In this document: in pieces, positions 7,240-20,943 of the stretch
Position numbering within the stretch: position 1 is the stretch's first letter
Layout: the number at the start of each line of letters is the position of its first letter
Source of the DNA: Wallemia ichthyophaga EXF-994
Lineage: Eukaryota > Fungi > Basidiomycota
DNA: 32,000 nt
NCBI RefSeq assembly: GCF_000400465.1
Contig: NW_008806296.1
Location: 30,001-62,000 of the forward strand
Direction: 5' to 3'
Translations under genes and position numbers: made by a program
The notes under the pieces: generated by a model
Databases searched by the model: none
Seen by the model: only the letters and a program-made list of their open reading frames with translations
What the model was told of the DNA's origin: nothing

Positions 7240-7534
7240 ACCGGGAGTAAAATTGTTAAAGGAAGCAAATTATTTGCGTAAACTGAGATGCGCGAGCTCA
7301 TCAAGCAGCTTGTAAATACAGAATTATTCAATGTGGCTATTCATTTTAATCCTATTGCGCTGCGACGACACTTATTTATTCATATCCTCACCCTCGAAAT
7401 CACGGTAGCAGGCCATATGAATGAGCAAACCACGAGCTGATGTGGCTTGTGAGAAAGTAGGTTTAAGCTTGGTGCGTATACAGGGTTGACTATGTTTTCT
7501 GTTGATTTTTTAATTAGTAAAAAAAGGCAAAAAT

Positions 7535-7640
7535 TGGAGCAGCCCGGAATTGAACCGGGATCGGAAAGAAACAGATAGTTGCTTTTCCTGAAAGACAGGA
7601 TTATGCAAGCCTTCAGTGATAACCATTACACTACTGCCCC
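7535..7640 (-). tRNA. tRNA-Ala(UGC) with 34-nt intron at 37/38 (copy 1)
   Basis: Reverse complement GGGGCAGTAGTGTAATGGTTATCACTGAAGGCTTGCA-[intron]-TCTTTCCGATCCCGGTTCAATTCCGGGCTGCTCCA. Full cloverleaf, G3:U70 Ala identity pair, followed by a T-run. Confidence 0.95.
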
Positions 7641-8550: not shown

Positions 8551-9087
8551 ATTGGGTGTGGTGCGGGCTCTAAGATTTGATCATTTTTGTGAGTGGACCA
8601 TGGTCATGTCTTGGAATGGCTTGTTGAGTTTTTTTAATCAATTTTGAGAAGGGATCCGCTTCGACGATTTTGTGGAGGCTTGAGCTGCCTAATTAACAGT
8701 CGATTTCATATGGTTCTGTGGTTTGTTCTTTGGGTACTGGGAGGAGTATCCTGCTGTTGCGACACTGCCATCAGCTACGGATCCGACCATATAATAAAAC
8801 CTTATGCTTTAGGTGTGTTCATGTTCTGTTGCTGTTGTTTTCTTCTATAGGTTTTTCTTTTGTTTTGTGTTTTGTCTGCTCATGGTGAGTCTGATATTTG
8901 TTTGTGGTACATGTTGTCGTGGGTATGGTAAGTGGTCAATCTGTTCTATATTGGATATGTCTACTATTTGGAGTGAGCGCTGGATAGGCTACGATATATC
9001 TGTAAGTGAAGATGAAGCAGGGGCTAAATGTACATTGGCTATCATATAGTAAACTGCCCATAATCGAAGTCGAGGTTGCAAAAGGGC

Positions 9088-9093
9088 AAAAAA
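9088..9093 (-). terminator. Pol III terminator (T6) of the permuted tRNA-Thr gene
   Basis: TAGC-TTTTTT-GCC lies immediately after nucleotide 37 of the downstream 5' half. Confidence 0.8.
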
Positions 9094-9097
9094 GCTA

Positions 9098-9174
9098 TAC
9101 GAGTCAGGCGCTCTAACCCCTGAGCTAAAAGCGCGATGTGCGCCTTCGCGGATTTGAACCGCGGACCTCCTGAT
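9098..9174 (-). tRNA. Circularly permuted tRNA-Thr(CGU): 3' half (nt 38-73) at 9174-9139, linker CATC at 9138-9135, 5' half (nt 1-37) at 9134-9098
   Basis: The minus strand reads ATCAGGAGGTCCGCGGTTCAAATCCGCGAAGGCGCA-CATC-GCGCTTTTAGCTCAGGGGTTAGAGCGCCTGACTCGTA. Swapping the halves gives a canonical 73-nt cloverleaf: acceptor GCGCTTT/AAGGCGC, D stem GCTC/GAGC, anticodon stem CCTGA/TCAGG, T stem CGCGG/CCGCG, loop CT-CGT-AA. Confidence 0.9.
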
Positions 9175-9390
9175 ATCGGAAGCTCATTGTTGCCGCCGAG
9201 ACAGATTCTTTTGGACTCTAACCAAATTTACGATAATTATTATTGTTATAATCAAGAGAAAATTGAGTCGACGCGGCGTCTATGGTGAGCTTTTTCAGCG
9301 TTATTGAGAACCACCAACAATTTAAAAATTACGACGCTAGTCAAGAAACGCTTCTAGTAAATTCAGCACCCCTTTTGACTCCTCATACTT

Positions 9391-9535
9391 TAAGAAGTAT
9401 TGATGGACGCACTTTATAACATGTATCGTCTTAACAATATAATCAGATTCCATCATCATCATTACAAGAAGTATAGATAGGCGAATATTATAAACATTGT
9501 AACGATTTTGACTATATTATGATTTCTATCTATCT
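9391..9535 (+). mobile_element. Two stacked LINE 3'-end stubs: ~9391-9462 with (CAT)n tail; ~9464-9535 with (CTAT)n tail
   Basis: The first stub resembles 10641-10710 (AAGAAGTATtGATgGaCG...ATGTATCG...CATCATCATCAT). The second has an exact AAGAAGTATAGATAGGCGAA...TTGTAACG.TTTTGACTAT match to the reverse complement of 13494-13560. Confidence 0.75.
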
Positions 9536-9747
9536 ATTGGTTATGTTTATTCTTTGGATAACTGGTGGATAGTGAATTGAGTTTGGCATATATGTCTGCG
9601 AAAGGGGTTCTGAAGCCACGTGGAAATTTCCTAAGGGCTGTAAAATGCATTTTGCTGAGTTATTTGATTGATTCAGATTTTAGGAGGTTGTTATTTTACG
9701 AGTAGCAATACCCCGCTGACCACTACCACCAACCACAACTACTCTCG

Positions 9748-11597
9748 ATGAAATCACTGTGGCAACTTGGTCGAGGCGCTTCACCCAGACACCCAATTCA
9801 ACTTTCACTGGATACCTGGCCACAAGGGAATTGAAGGCAACGAGAGAGCAGACCGCGCCGCGAACAAAGGCAGAGCAAACCACGGAAACGGTTTTGTTCT
9901 GGATATAGAACTCCGAACCTCCTGCTCTGTTACCCGGCGAAACCTCCACGAAACCCTCACTGCACCCATGCGCGTGGAGGGCAACACTCTCACGGGTCTC
10001 ACCTCAAGAACAGCAAGAACCGCCAAAGGCAATCTCAGCTCCATCAAGACCGCCAAGCTGTTGGAAAGTGTGCCCCGGGCCACTCGCTGTCTAGCAACAC
10101 AGCTCCGCTCTGGACACTTCCCTACCACTAAGTCCTATCGCTATCGCTTTAAGCTCACTGATTCTGCCAAGTGCAGCACCTGTCGATTAGACGACACTAT
10201 CCCACACCGTATCTTCATCTGCTCAAGACACATCATGGCGAGAATAGCTTTGAGAAGGAAGATTCTCGCTCTCGGTATTAGGTTCGAATTGGGACCTATG
10301 CTGAGAAACGCCAAATCTCTCCAAGCGCTATACGAATTCTTCAAGCCACAAATCTCCCATTCTCACCGACTTCTGTAGAGCACACAAACTGCAGAGGGTT
10401 TTACGCGGAGTGGTACTTTCGGGTGCCATTCAGGCTTTTCCCCCTTCAGGCCCACCCACCCTCTCATTTTTATTGATTTCGGTACACTAGTTCGACACAC
10501 CACAACAGCCTAACCAAAACTCGCACAATTCCGGGTTCTCGGTACAGCCATCGGTCGGATCGAGTAAATCTAAACCTTTACGCTCAGCACAGAAACGCTA
10601 TACTCTCAAATCAACGTCACACAAGTCCAAATAGCAACATAAGAAGTATAGATAGGCGCAGTTTTACTATGTATCGCTTTAACTATATATTATATTTCAT
10701 CATCATCATCAGCAACTTGGTCGGCAGCTTAAACTGGCCAGGCCGGTAAGGTCACTTAAAGGCCTTGTAAATCCATTCAAAGCAGCAGCAGCAGTGCGCA
10801 CTCAGGCGTTACCAAGAGCAGCTCACTCATCTACCAGATTGTCATCACGCACCATCCACAGAAACTCCTTCCACACACTGGGCCACTTATGCGTAACCAG
10901 ATCAGCCACCAGACCAGCATTTGGCAACTTCGCCAGCCGTACTCCTCAAGCAGGTCTAGGATGTGCAAGAACATACGCTACAGGCAGGGGAGCAGTAGAT
11001 GCAATCCAGAATATCAACGTGTTTGCCAGATGTACTCTCAACCTGCTCGGCGAGGACCATCTGGACAGTCTGCAAGCATCACAATTACGCCGTGAGCGGG
11101 AGGATGATCACCTCACGAACATGAAGAGCTACTTCGATGTCCCCGCCTGCAAGACTGTCCTCGTAGCTCCTCTTTCATCATCGCTCTCGCACCTCCTCAC
11201 CGAGACGAAGCCTTTGCATACCGACAGCGCAAGCGCTAATGGGGTGTTGTTCGATGACACTTTCGTCAGAGACCTCGTCAGCCTGAGGGTGTCGTCCAAC
11301 GTACACGCGAAGCGGCTCGATGCACTGTGTGCGAGTGTGCAGTCCGTCGCCGATACACTCGAGGTCACCAGCTCGGCCAGCGGCCTCCTCATCGTGAAGG
11401 CAACGTTCGATGGCACGGCTAAGGAGATCGGGAAGCTCATTCATGATAAATTGGACAGACTGGTTCTTGACGACATCGCCAACGCCCATCGATTTTCGGG
11501 CTGGTACAGGCTCTATCAGCTCGACGGAGATACTGTCCTCCATGACATGGTATCCAAGTCTTTCTACCTCCCAGACCCCGACCAGACCTTGAATTAG
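9748..11597 (+). pseudogene. Hypothetical 299-aa protein with Arg/Ser-rich, mitochondrial-presequence-like N-terminus, interrupted at codon 9 by a LINE
   Basis: Removing 9774-10723 (element plus one TSD) gives an uninterrupted 900-nt ORF from ATG9748 to stop 11597: MKSLWQLGRQLKLARPVRSLKGLVNPFKAAAAVRTQALP...PDQTLN. Confidence 0.85.
9774..10711 (+). mobile_element. 5'-truncated non-LTR retrotransposon (RNase H + CCHC, Tad1/I-like) with (CAT)4 tail and 12-bp TSD
   Basis: The ORF to 10378 has the RNase H C-terminus FHWIPGHKGIEGNERADRAA, then QLRSGH and C-x2-C-x7-H-x4-C. TSD GCAACTTGGTCG at 9762-9773 and 10712-10723. Confidence 0.93.
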
Positions 11598-11713: not shown

Positions 11714-12541
11714 TCATCCCTCAACTGGATTGTCTGCTTTCTTTGACGATGCCTTCCCGCTCACTGAATCAACTTCTCCACTTGTCTTTGTTGCGTTCTC
11801 TGTCTTCTCTGCATTCTCATCTCTCCCTCTTTCGTCTACTGGCTGATCACCCTCCTCAATTGCTGTTATCCCTAGCTTTTCCTCGCTGAGCGAGTCCATT
11901 ACCTCAATGCAACCGCGTGACGCAACGAACACAATCGTAGTAAAGAAGACGATCCAATCATCAAATTTGGAAACATCCCATATAATTTTCCCTGCATTAA
12001 ATTAAATAAGTTTCATGAAGAAGCAAAGCATTGTGTTACTGAAAACAGCCGCGGATGATAACAGCAAAATTATCAACGAGACATAACTGAAGGGTTTCTT
12101 GTGTAAGTCAATTATTGTTTGCGCTTGGTAAGCAAACAGCCTTTCTAGGATAAAGACAACCAGGAAAACAATCACAGGGACCAGGCAAGGTATTGCAAGG
12201 CTTGGTACAATACTACAGTCTCTCACGCCAGCTGTGAGGAGCAATGTGAATGATAGCAGTAGAGCAGCGAAGACGTTTACTAAACACTTTTCTCTGGGAC
12301 TCAGTTGTTCAGCTCTTGCGGGTGTACCAGGTATATCATTGGGAAGGATCGACTTATCCACACATTCTAATAATATAAGAAAGACCAGACCCGCTAAACC
12401 ACCACCCAATACAGTTCCAATCGTGTACGCAGGACTAATATCAGTTGTTGGCATTGATTTTGACGATATAACTTGTTCGAAGAAGAATATAACGAATTTC
12501 GCTACATTTGCATTAAGCAAACCATAGTTCACGAATCGCAT
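11714..12541 (-). CDS. Hypothetical multi-pass membrane protein with a charged C-terminal tail; intron 11992-12039
   Basis: ORF 12002-12541 has several hydrophobic segments. A 48-nt GT-AG intron joins it in frame (AAVF-R-KIIWDVSKFDDWIVFFTTIVFVASRG) to ORF 11714-11932. Confidence 0.7.
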
Positions 12542-13493: not shown

Positions 13494-14351
13494 TAGAAAT
13501 AATAATGTATAGTCAAAAGCGTTACAACGATTAATAATTTTCGCCTATCTATACTTCTTGTGCATTGAAAGCTGACGATTGTAGTGACTCAAAGGGATGC
13601 GGTTCTTGGCACGTGTGCCGTAAATTGGGAGGTAACTACGTGGAGCTACCGGAGCCACGCGGGTGGGTGCTGAGCTGGCTTTTGAAGAACTCGTAGAGAG
13701 CTTTAAGAGCTTTTTCATTTGAAAGCATATTTTCATCTCGAACCTTAACCCCATTCATATATCCTCCTCCTCAACGATAATCTTGCTTGATCGAAATTCC
13801 TACATCTGAAAATTCTGTGTGTGGTACTGTCTACTTCATTTCACTTGCTGCAAAGTGGTGAGTCGGACAGTTTGAATCGGAATCGGTAAGACTTGGCAGT
13901 AGGGAAGTGGCCTGAGCGGATTTGTGTGGAAGTCATCCTACCCATTGCTCTCTCTGCATCTTTCGACTTTGGTTCTGGTAAACTACGTACATCTTTAGGA
14001 ATATTTGTCGATGCTGAGGGAGAGGCTCCATGACACCATAATTGAAGAAAGCTAATTTATTCACCGTACCGGCCTCGAACGCAATTTCCCGCGCACAGCG
14101 TGCTCTCCGCTCCCTTTGTGGCGCAGCGGGAGCCAACCCCGCCCAAAAGCCGCTCGCTTACACAAAGAAACCCAACCGCAGGTGCGGAAGTAGACCTTCT
14201 GCACACGCGCTTGCCGCTGCGCCGCAAAATAACCGCTTGGAAGAATCTCTTCTTTGTCAGTATCATACTAATAGCCGGGACCTCCTTAGCAAGCGGTATA
14301 AGGATGTGCCCCTACCTTCCTAGGTAATACAGCGGGCAAGATGCAGGAACA
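13494..14351 (-). mobile_element. Decayed LINE copy (subfamily Y); candidate 9-bp TSD
   Basis: The minus strand encodes TQIRSGHFPTAKSYRFRFKLSDSPLC..*..HRIFRC..ALYEFFK, homologous to the 9774 element but with stops and frameshifts. It carries the 3' motif AAGAAGTATAGATAGGCG. GGTAACATG is repeated at 13485-13493 and 14352-14360. Clear homology extends only to ~13950. Confidence 0.8.
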
Positions 14352-14577
14352 GGTAACATGACATCATGGTCGCTATGGGAACAATGAACAATGAAGATTA
14401 TGCATGATTATGCACGAGAACAATGAAGATAACGAAAAAATGGAAATAACCCTAGAATTCTAAACTATGTAAACAACTACCTTTCTTTTGATACATCTAA
14501 GACTTAATTCTTTTATTAATCTCAGCGCCTTGCTCTTTGTGTGCACTTTGACCTCACAAAGATCAAGACGTTTACAC

Positions 14578-14665
14578 GGCAGGATGGCCGAGTGGTCTAA
14601 GGCGCACGGTTAAGGCGAAAGCATCCGTGTTCGAAAGAGCGAGGGTTCGAATCCCTCTCCTGTCA
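14578..14665 (+). tRNA. tRNA-Leu(AAG) with 8-nt intron (14616-14623) and short variable arm
   Basis: GGCAGGATGGCCGAGTGGTCTAAGGCG-CACGG-TTAAGG-[CGAAAGCA]-T-CCGTG-TTCGAAAGAGC-GAGGGTTCGAATCCCTC-TCCTGTC-A, followed by T-runs. Confidence 0.92.
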
Positions 14666-15329: not shown

Positions 15330-15662
15330 TCTCAGTCAGGCGCTCGAAAAGAATGTGAACAAGCAACGTGCCTCGATTCCGTCAAAAATGTTAATTTCCC
15401 CATCACAAATTATGTTACGAAAATATACATATAAAAAAGCATTTCACACCAATTTATTAATCTAAAAAATCTTCACCGCTTTTGAACTCAATTAACTCCT
15501 CAGGAAGAAAATATTTTATTGCATTGGTATCATGAAGCTAAAAGCACCCAAATCCAAGAAAAACTTGGAAAATTTACTTAAACGCCAAAACGCGAAAATA
15601 ACAGAATTGATGACGTAAAAGATATTTGATATTGTATTTGTTTTCAAGCCTGGGATGTCAAA

Positions 15663-15768
15663 GGGGCAGTAGTGTAATGGTTATCACTGAAGGCTTGCAT
15701 AGTCCTGTCTTTCAGGCAAAGCAACTATCTGTTTCTTTCCGATCCCGGTTCAATTCCGGGCTGCTCCA
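15663..15768 (+). tRNA. tRNA-Ala(UGC) with 34-nt intron (15700-15733) (copy 2)
   Basis: Exons are identical to the 7535-7640 copy; the intron differs at 2 positions. G3:U70 pair present; followed by ATTTTTGCC. Confidence 0.95.
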
Positions 15769-16131
15769 ATTTTTGCCATTTGTTTGTCTGGATCATTCTA
15801 GTCAGCGACAAAACAGCGACAAAACGTATGTGACAAAATTTAGACTTTCTTATAATTTGAGACTAATGCGGTGACTGATGGTAGGATTTGTGTTACTTGT
15901 CGGCGTTTTCCCCGTCGTGGCTCGAAGATTCAGCAACGCTGAGCAACACCTCCTTTTATGGTGACGAATGATATAGATAAATGAGATGGAGTTGTCCCGC
16001 ATACATCAAAAGGACCATTCTATTGTAACTGAAATATACAATGACACATACACGATATGATGTGAAACAAAGTAAATACGGCAAATGACAAAACAAAAAG
16101 CAAATGAAAAAAGAGGAAATAGAAATAACAA

Positions 16132-19500: not shown

Positions 19501-20943
19501 ATGAGTTGCAGCAATCCGCAATCTGAAGTAAAGGATCCGGGCGCTGATATTCCAGAGCGTGAGCTTGAGTCATTTATACCCACCAGCCATGCTCAACAAC
19601 CTAATCCCAGGTCGTACGAAACCAAAGAACAATCAATGTATCAAGTGCAAGACTGCAGCGCCTGTTATTCAAATTAGACACGCGTTGTACTGCAGGTTGG
19701 TCTGATCCACGCATAACCACCCACCACTCAATTCCCCACCAGAGAATGCTTCGTTTACGCCACTTCCGGCAAATTCCTCAAATGGTTCCTCTCAAACTTC
19801 AAACCCAACGACGTTCATCCTGTCTTCTACGTAGCTGTCTCTGGTGGTCCCTCCTCTCGTTATCTTCTCCAGCTTCTCCACACTCAAATGTCTCCGAGGA
19901 AAGGCAAAGGTAGTTTCATTAGGCCTGGCTCAGCTGAGAAGCTTGTCGTTATCTACGTCGATCAATCGAAAGTCGTCCCTGGTGCTGAAAATCTTCGCAA
20001 TCACATAGAAGACATGGTCAAAGATTTTCCTTCAGTTGAGATTATTGAGGCTGATGTCTCTGAATCATGGAAGGGCAGTCAAGCGTCGATATCTGCCTAT
20101 TTATCCGGTCAGCCAGGCCAGCCACCCAGTGCAACAGCGTCTGAGCCCACTGCGGATTTATTCGACAGCACGCTATCAACATCATCACAAGAATCGCATC
20201 TGGCTCTACTCACCCATCACATTATCCTACGTGAAGCGCGAAAGCATGCCGACAGCCTACTCGGTAAAGATAGCACAGCGCCTCTCTTCTTGGGAACGAG
20301 CGCAACACGCGTAACGATCAAGCTTCTCTCCTCCATGTCCAGAGGCAGAGGCTGGTCTGTGGGATCTGGCGAAGTGCAACCTGAATCAACTCAGTATGGT
20401 CTCAATGTATACCAGCCGCTTCTCAACACCTCCTCAAAGGAAATAGCCTACTACAACCGGTTCGCTATTCCAGCACACTCGCAAGCAGTGGTGAACAGAT
20501 CTTTTACCACTTTCTCTCCACCTAAATCTTCCATTGATAGACTAACCGAGGAGCTCGTCGTGTCGCTCGAACGCGGTTTTCCTTCGACAGTGTCGACAGT
20601 GGCGCGCACAGGCAACAAGATATCTTTCGCCGGTGAAACTAAGGAGGGTGAGAGGCTGTGTACTCTGTGTGGTTGGCCGGCCAGAGCTAAAGCGAATGAA
20701 TGGAAAAATGGCATTGCAATAACTAAACTAGCGGGCGAAGAGGATGAGAGTAATCCCCTAGCTGATATGCTCTGCTATGGCTGCTACACTAATCTCACTG
20801 ATTCGCGCGCCCGTTCTCATGTCAATTACGCTCTGCCAGGATGGACAGATGAGTATGCCGAGAAACAGAAAGTGACGGAATCAGAGATGCGCAAGGAGAT
20901 TGAGGATTGTCTGATAGACGACAATGACAATGACAATGAGTAG
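19501..20943 (+). CDS. CTU2: Cytoplasmic tRNA 2-thiolation protein 2; 5' introns not fully resolved
   Basis: RECF..., the degenerate PP-loop VAVSGGPSS, LGTSATR, ERGFPSTVSTVARTGNK, and C-terminal CTLC and LCYGC. Confidence 0.88.

Follow-up and report, generated by a model that had tools for sequence, protein, structure and literature searches.

On the minus strand of the window, the 32,000-nt stretch of Wallemia ichthyophaga EXF-994 DNA analysed here, a circularly permuted tRNA-Thr(CGU) gene structure with its two halves in swapped order lies at 9185-9088. By direct reading, this segment consists of GAGCTTCCGAT, ATCAGGAGGTCCGCGGTTCAAATCCGCGAAGGCGCA (nt 38-73), CATC, GCGCTTTTAGCTCAGGGGTTAGAGCGCCTGACTCGTA (nt 1-37) and TAGCTTTTTT, and all the features given below are on the same strand. 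The first element is a leader, GAGCTTCCGAT (-11 to -1, 9175-9185), which shows 0 differences between two strains. It is followed by the 3' half (nt 38-73, 9139-9174), whose limits, like those of the 5' half, come from ARAGORN on the rejoined halves; it contains the 3' strand of the anticodon stem, the variable loop, the T arm, the 3' strand of the acceptor stem and the discriminator A73, and includes the B box GGTTCAAATCC (9150-9160). The linker CATC (9135-9138), which has neither a T run nor CCA, lies between A73 and G1. The 5' half (nt 1-37, 9098-9134) comprises the 5' strand of the acceptor stem, the D arm with the A box TAGCTCAGGGGT (9127-9116), the 5' strand of the anticodon stem and the nucleotides C32 U33 C34 G35 U36 A37, with the anticodon CGT at 9101-9099. 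Finally, there is a trailer, TAGCTT (+1 to +6, 9092-9097), whose +2 position, an A in the window, is occupied by G in strain GCA_004917845.1, and a direct reading places a run of six T residues resembling a Pol III terminator at 9088-9093, overlapping trailer positions +5 and +6. An AT-rich block located 57-76 nt upstream of nt 38, TATAACAATAATAATTATCG (9231-9250), may represent a TATA-like Pol III promoter element.

Once rejoined at 37/38, the halves give a 73-nt tRNA-Thr(CGT) in which ARAGORN finds 21 of 21 stem pairs intact, with one G.U. The rejoined molecule keeps U8, A14, G18/G19, U33, A37-A38, the T-loop TTCAAAT, G1:C72, C2:G71, G35 and U36, so that the usual tertiary and identity nucleotides are present, including U36-A37-A38 across the junction. 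The position of the junction is the canonical intron position, which corresponds to type II in the algal classification. According to this, the structural features expected of a type II permuted gene are found at the locus: the 3' half comes first on one strand, the rejoined halves form a canonical cloverleaf, leader and trailer make a relaxed BHB-like arrangement, a T stretch lies downstream and the linker contains no terminator. By its anatomy, the Wallemia locus is a known kind of gene in an unexpected lineage. The leader at 9185-9175, the trailer TAGCTT and the 37/38 register of the permuted pair, which had been described in an initial annotation of this DNA, were all borne out by our reading of the minus strand.

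Permuted tRNAs were searched for by doubling 120-nt windows from both strands and asking ARAGORN for an intron-containing tRNA spanning the joint. In 149 kb of Wallemia DNA the sole return was the permuted Thr locus, with 0 false positives. When run on the window in default mode, ARAGORN misses this gene and all three native tRNA genes, and Rfam does not return the permuted gene in the window even at E<=1. No other Thr half was found in the ~170 kb of Wallemia DNA examined; a 12-nt match to nt 22-33 at 15334-15345 turned out on inspection to be a chance match. Scans of metagenomes for exact patterns of the 3'-half/linker/5'-half arrangement and of nt 8-37 produced no matches, and an exact-protein look-up of the ORFs adjacent to the tRNA (9136-9288, 12002-12541 and 8813-9049) returned no record. 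As ACG codons are used in the ORFs of the window (9 per 1000), a decoder for them is needed.

The window reads as nuclear DNA of a halophilic basidiomycete. Its ORF at 19888-20943 is CTU2, 100% identical to a W. ichthyophaga protein, other ORFs encode typical fungal proteins (GH32, ATG22, Frag1 and RasGEF) and the GC content is about 40-50%. Rfam identifies three tRNA genes in the window, all of them with introns at 37/38: two tRNA-Ala(UGC) genes with 34-nt introns (7535-7640, minus strand, and 15663-15768, plus strand) and a tRNA-Leu(AAG) gene (14578-14665) with a long variable arm, U32.G-3 and the 8-nt intron CGAAAGCA. That all the native tRNA genes of the window bear introns suggests an intron-rich tRNA set in Wallemia. 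The tRNA-Ala genes are near-identical copies that form a 122-nt, 97% inverted repeat (7519-7640 and 15663-15784), 8 kb apart, with identical exons and with introns that differ at 2 positions; between the two arms of this repeat, which could bring about inversion, lie the permuted tRNA, a LINE fragment and tRNA-Leu. The short-read contigs of Logan stop within the tRNA-Ala repeat. Relatives of CTU2 and ATG22 (80% and 70% DNA identity) were found; short-read assemblies are interrupted at the repeated tRNA-Ala, which is why the contigs of these relatives do not reach the tRNA region.

The permuted gene lies in intergenic DNA that has been rearranged and has received a LINE insertion. A 5'-truncated non-LTR (LINE-like) fragment of 938 bp occupies 9774-10711, with an RNase H domain ORF at 9767-10378. 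The element has a (TCA)n tail at its end and a target duplication of 12 bp, GCAACTTGGTCG, on either side; strain GCA_004917845.1 lacks it, and there an annotated 301-aa gene model runs unbroken over the empty site. We regard this fragment, located some 590 nt upstream of the permuted tRNA, as a recent and polymorphic insertion. The segment 10908-14580 shares 72-84% identity with the 3' end and the downstream region of a Med12/UBX-type gene in another W. ichthyophaga contig (L009, 15817-18763), of which it is a paralogous copy; the blocks are rearranged and inverted between the copies, and the ORF at 10794-11597 appears to be a pseudogene remnant of this Med12/UBX-type gene. The surrounding 9.3-14.6 kb are a mosaic of diverged paralogous segments. 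A query made from seven neighbouring ORFs returned only the paralogous Med12/UBX locus in W. ichthyophaga and W. mellicola, and neither copy has the permuted tRNA. Two further observations concern these paralogous segments. A stretch of ~130-170 nt at 9294-9461, 110 nt upstream of the leader, is 80-82% identical to L009 18131-18296 and L008 17114-17243; in W. ichthyophaga as well as in W. mellicola, the matching DNA follows the Med12/UBX gene. Between species this stretch is better conserved than its surroundings, and it has no Rfam match. The upstream flank of tRNA-Leu (14297-14580; L009 18392-18763) carries a short inverted repeat, ATTGTTCTTTATTCTCATTGTTCTCA / TGAGAACAATGAGAATAAAGAACAAT in L009, like the terminal repeats of transposons, and no tRNA follows the L009 copy of this flank.

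The same permuted order, with unique flanks on both sides, is found in an independent assembly of a second W. ichthyophaga strain (GCA_004917845.1, locus L010), a strain set apart from the window by 16 SNPs in 1221 nt and the nearby 938-bp indel. Short-read assemblies of the W. ichthyophaga genome break at repeated tRNA genes, as seen in the Logan contigs that end in the tRNA-Ala repeat, and a permuted order might therefore be suspected to arise from collapsed tRNA repeats during assembly. However, since an independent strain at this distance from the window has the same order and unique flanks, we rejected the artefact explanation, which we hold to be extremely improbable. In the block 8553-9773, which holds the permuted tRNA, the two strains diverge by 1.3%, compared with 0.24% in the next 20 kb (10712-30959), and the SNPs are densest (5 per 100 nt) directly upstream of the leader. 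The tRNA and linker show 0 differences in 77 nt and the flanks 8 in 300 nt, which would be the right direction for constraint on the tRNA although the comparison is not significant (about P=0.13).

The initial annotation had proposed that trailer nucleotides A+2, G+3, C+4, U+5 and U+6 pair with leader nucleotides U-7, C-8, G-9, A-10 and G-11, and all these pairs hold. The resulting outer helix has 5 bp (A+2:U-7, G+3:C-8, C+4:G-9, U+5:A-10 and U+6.G-11), and in the strict register the trinucleotides 36/37/+1 and -2/-1/38 are left unpaired between it and the anticodon stem. Leader G-3 faces C32, and the C32:G-3 pair proposed earlier is possible and is also present in the tRNA-Ala introns; in fact, G at -3 is common to all three native tRNA introns of the window, being opposite C32 in Ala and opposite U32 in Leu. 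The central helix was said to have 2 of its 4 pairs, and this is exact: in the strict BHB register the two pairs, C32:G-3 and G35.U-6, are non-adjacent, and U33/C-4 and C34/C-5 are mismatched. A strict BHB (hBHBh', with two 3-nt bulges and a 4-bp central helix) is therefore not formed by the permuted locus. In the sequence we find the intact mature domain, the sites at 37/+1 and -1/38, the possible C32:G-3 pair and the 3' site in a 3-nt bulge, all of them features of SEN substrates. The initial annotation had regarded this geometry as the one that the tRNA splicing endonuclease cuts, which is sustained as far as the relaxed register, the 37/38 junction and the outer helix (probability 0.73-1.0) are concerned, but the arrangement is not a true BHB, as the central helix is absent.

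Folding of the precursor, which had been put forward as a check, predicted the outer helix and altered the picture of the anticodon contact. Pairing was estimated from constrained folds in which the cloverleaf was enforced. Unconstrained folding of the precursor did not recover the cloverleaf (z = -1.6), a failure that is common for tRNAs. In the constrained folds the outer helix contributes -4.7 kcal/mol, and the probability of 0.73-1.0 applies to leaders of 11-20 nt; with leaders of 30-45 nt it is 0.4-0.8. The isolated pairs C32:G-3 and G35.U-6 have probability 0 in the thermodynamic ensemble, which prefers a shifted helix between the anticodon and the leader CGA at -4 to -2 (U33:A-2, C34:G-3 and G35:C-4). 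The native Ala intron is likewise predicted to pair with the anticodon (UUGC with GCAA), and a helix of this kind is made by ordinary eukaryal introns. In either register, U36-A37-U+1 is predicted to be unpaired and the 3' site to lie in an unpaired -1/38 or -2/-1/38. On the basis of these models, the splice-site motif of the permuted locus would correspond to the relaxed 'no H' form in the published nomenclature (PMC3978253), a form found among accepted introns and permuted genes as well.

How far such pairing may be due to chance was estimated with random 11-mers and 6-mers drawn from the window as flanks. The 5-bp outer helix in the exact register appeared in 0.8% of random flanks, or 1.4% when +5 and +6 were fixed as terminator T, and the exact-register helix together with G at -3 in 0.18-0.32%. 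A 5-bp helix in any register is found in 29% of random flanks, so it is the register alone that makes the helix notable. When folding was register-free, a stabilisation at least as great as that observed (-6.9 kcal/mol, with a 20-nt leader) was reached by 9% of random flanks, at least 5 leader-trailer pairs with all four splice nucleotides unpaired by 3.2%, and both criteria together by 0.27%.

The second strain also bears on this helix. The A-to-G change at trailer +2 in L010 converts A:U-7 into G.U-7 and keeps the pair, and another flank difference lies at -12, just outside the helix. The one-sided change at +2 would be compatible with the helix, bearing in mind that a transition preserves pairing by chance about half the time. 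As to conservation of the pairing in orthologous loci, on which the initial annotation had made its reading depend, the comparison covers one second strain of the species, with this one-sided change.

The outer helix has a second property. AGCU is self-complementary and trailer +2 to +6 (AGCUU) is identical to leader -10 to -6, so that what pairs as a helix also reads as a direct repeat of 5 nt, AGCTT, present on either flank. The register of this overlap is that expected from a single 11-nt intron, TAGCTTCCGAT (RNA: UAGCUUCCGAU), kept on both sides, and the pairing of leader and trailer could then be inherited from the origin of the locus instead of selected. The earlier description of the flanks as an opened intron is possibly literal. 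Two origins have been proposed for permuted tRNA genes (PMC3978253): in one of them a gene with an intron is duplicated in tandem and its outer parts are then lost, and in the other a circular pre-tRNA is reverse-transcribed over slightly more than a full turn. The single-intron overlap at the Wallemia locus fits either of them.

The main alternative to a functional gene is that the locus is a fairly young, non-functional rearranged or retro-copied tRNA-Thr fragment, 'dead on arrival' and intact only for lack of time to decay. In that case, just over one unit of a tandem or circular intron-containing Thr(CGU) copy would have been fixed (TAGCTTCCGAT, 3' half, CATC and 5' half), the leader being the intron minus its first base, the trailer the first six bases of the intron and the T run a part of the AT-rich insertion site, and the pairing would be due solely to the self-complementarity of the duplicated AGCT. 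Several observations are in agreement with such a dead copy: trailer +2 to +6 equals leader -10 to -6 in the register of one 11-nt intron, the leader ends in CCGAT with an anticodon complement and G-3 like a real intron 3' end, the mosaic surroundings at 9.3-14.6 kb contain a polymorphic LINE and so a source of reverse transcriptase, the order of the boxes is reversed, the difference in constraint between tRNA and flanks is not significant, and both duplication and reverse transcription of a circular pre-tRNA have been proposed in the review literature (PMC3978253). However, the in-register repeat is itself statistically weak (p about 0.05 if it has to start at +1 or +2, and 0.36 otherwise), local alignment of the 100-nt flanks against the halves detected no remnants of decayed outer halves (p=0.12 to 1.0), and there is no other Thr half in about 170 kb. 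A dead copy also needs several coincidences at once, namely a palindromic overlap, the fifth pair at G-11, a T run at +5, 77 nt without damage and a change at +2 that keeps the pair. We consider the dead copy a serious candidate whose chances fall somewhat short of even. The initial annotation had concluded from the opened-intron behaviour of the flanks that they argue for function rather than debris, and in our view this is plausible: the register, G-3 and T6 speak for it. Against it speak an AGCTT repeat that the origin may suffice to explain, the reversed boxes, the missing central helix, the short linker of 4 nt, an internal T4 run, strain SNPs in the upstream region and the rearranged surroundings hit by a LINE.

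With regard to transcription, the T6 run begins at +5, and the native Ala and Leu genes have T4-T7 runs 2-4 nt after the end of the coding part. There is no T5 or longer run inside the permuted unit, and nt 5-8 are TTTT, an internal T4 run that could give some early termination. The B box (9160-9150) lies upstream of the A box (9127-9116), that is, in reversed order. In opisthokonts tRNA genes are normally transcribed from internal promoters bound by TFIIIC, and according to the TFIIIC/TFIIIB geometry an A box at 9127-9116 would set the start near 9146, inside the T arm in the 3' half, so that transcription of the whole precursor would depend on a promoter further upstream. The reversed boxes are a real obstacle to TFIIIC-directed transcription in a fungus. 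No upstream motif common to the other tRNA genes of the window was found, and one of the 5 strain SNPs in the 100 nt upstream of the permuted gene (9244) falls inside the AT-rich block.

A start at this position could also mean that TFIIIC directs transcription from inside the 3' half and that the product is not a tRNA but a small RNA resembling a 5' tRNA half, whose primary transcript would be the acceptor hairpin followed by the 5' half and the trailer. The start near 9146 that the A box would set and the T6 run 4 nt after nt 37 are consistent with it, but the intact 3' half, the exact 37/38 junction, G-3 and the leader-trailer register are left unexplained, and we know of no gene class that makes such a 5'-half RNA from an internal start. 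We consider this product improbable.

Building on the anatomy of the gene, the pairing register, the terminator and the presence of the locus in two strains, we propose as the most likely one the following route, by which the permuted tRNA would be transcribed, cleaved, ligated and used in translation. Pol III would make one precursor containing the leader, the 3' half, CAUC, the 5' half and the trailer, which would start downstream of the AT-rich block and end at the T6 run. The body would fold into the cloverleaf, with the CATC-encoded linker closing the acceptor stem as a 5-nt loop, and the leader and trailer would be the two ends of an opened intron held together by 5 bp (+2 to +6 with -7 to -11). 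The leader would contact the anticodon loop, through G-3 with C32 or through CGA with U33-C34-G35, and A37|U+1 and U-1|A38 would stay unpaired, a configuration like that of relaxed ('no H') BHB-like substrates in eukaryotes. The SEN endonuclease would then cut at 37/+1 and -1/38, and the Trl1 ligase with Tpt1 would join A37 to A38. Removal of the linker would require RNase P and tRNase Z, acting either after circularisation, as in algae, or before splicing, and CCA would be added last.

In budding yeast, end processing precedes cytoplasmic splicing (PMC4090602), and therefore a route in which the linker is removed first is possible. In this variant, a two-piece pre-tRNA would be held by its stems and by the leader-trailer helix and then spliced, so that the 5-bp helix would be needed more than in the circular route. 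It is in agreement with the proposed processing that eukaryal splicing endonucleases normally act at 37/38 and that the validated algal and archaeal cases include ones with relaxed 'no H' motifs and with type II junctions (PMC3978253). All these data lead us to give the proposition that the permuted Thr locus is functional by the SEN/Trl1 route an even chance. The fuller claim, that a basidiomycete uses a permuted gene for tRNA-Thr(CGU), possibly its sole dedicated ACG decoder, cut and rejoined by SEN and Trl1 through a circular or two-piece intermediate, we put just under even.

If this is true, permuted tRNAs would for the first time be known from beyond algae, nucleomorphs and archaea, namely from an opisthokont. 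A working gene would mean that a eukaryal ruler-type endonuclease and a yeast-type ligase can mature an 'opened-intron' precursor, that Pol III can transcribe a gene with the B box before the A box, and that in fungal genomes an isoacceptor that is required can escape the standard tRNA finders, as the permuted gene escaped ARAGORN and Rfam here. The question of origin, tandem duplication versus reverse-transcribed circles, would also enter a group with good laboratory genetics. Even if the copy is dead, it would still be a rare snapshot of a proposed intermediate.

Permuted tRNA genes have been documented in C. merolae, prasinophytes, chlorarachniophyte nucleomorphs and Thermofilum pendens (PMC3978253), which amounts to six algal species or nucleomorphs and one archaeon, and reviews up to 2026 keep to those lineages (PMC3978253, PMC13578239). 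A review of 2014 describes most eukaryotes as having no permuted tRNA genes (PMC3978253), and full-text literature searches that combined permuted tRNA with fungi, basidiomycetes or Wallemia turned up no such case. Among the C. merolae genes is a type II tRNA-Thr(CGU) whose intervening sequence measures 31 bp (Soma et al. 2007; table in PMC3978253). The Wallemia locus resembles the type II genes of this alga in having the 3' half upstream on one strand, a short intervening sequence without promoter or terminator, the 37/38 junction and the same anticodon, as well as leader/trailer pairing around the processing sites, a downstream T stretch and an AT-rich upstream region. However, the intervening sequences of the alga measure 7-74 nt (PMC3978253), and no algal gene has one as short as the 4 nt found in the fungus; the Wallemia locus also lacks the central BHB helix. 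C. merolae has no recognisable TFIIIC box-binding subunits and its transcription is TATA-dependent, while such transcription is not known for Wallemia.

The nearest structural match to the Wallemia locus is found in prasinophytes (Ostreococcus and Micromonas) and in the Bigelowiella natans nucleomorph (Maruyama et al. 2010), whose genes are mostly type II with relaxed hBH motifs, as in Wallemia, a relaxation that fits the eukaryal ruler-type endonuclease (PMC3978253). They belong to another lineage and have linkers of 12-26 nt, and for some of them expression and circular intermediates have been shown. In T. pendens (Chan et al. 2011) the intervening sequences are of 1 and 7 nt and the motifs are relaxed ('no H'), and 1 nt plus the encoded CCA gives the same loop size as CATC in Wallemia; however, these genes are archaeal, with the junction at 59/60, an encoded CCA and an endonuclease of broad specificity. 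The split tRNAs of Nanoarchaeum equitans are relevant to the two-piece route, as a leader-trailer helix joins the exon ends for the splicing endonuclease, but they come from separate genes with long complementary flanks and a strict BHB, whereas the Wallemia locus would rely on one transcript and 5 bp. Closest at hand, the native tRNA-Ala and tRNA-Leu genes of the window share with the permuted locus the 37/38 position, G-3 facing pyrimidine 32, a stretch of the intron that is complementary to the anticodon and a 3' site in -2/-1/38. The native introns, on the other hand, run without a break and form no outer helix in the +2/-7 register, and in the open 'intron' of the permuted locus this helix would have to stand in for the covalent link of the native ones.
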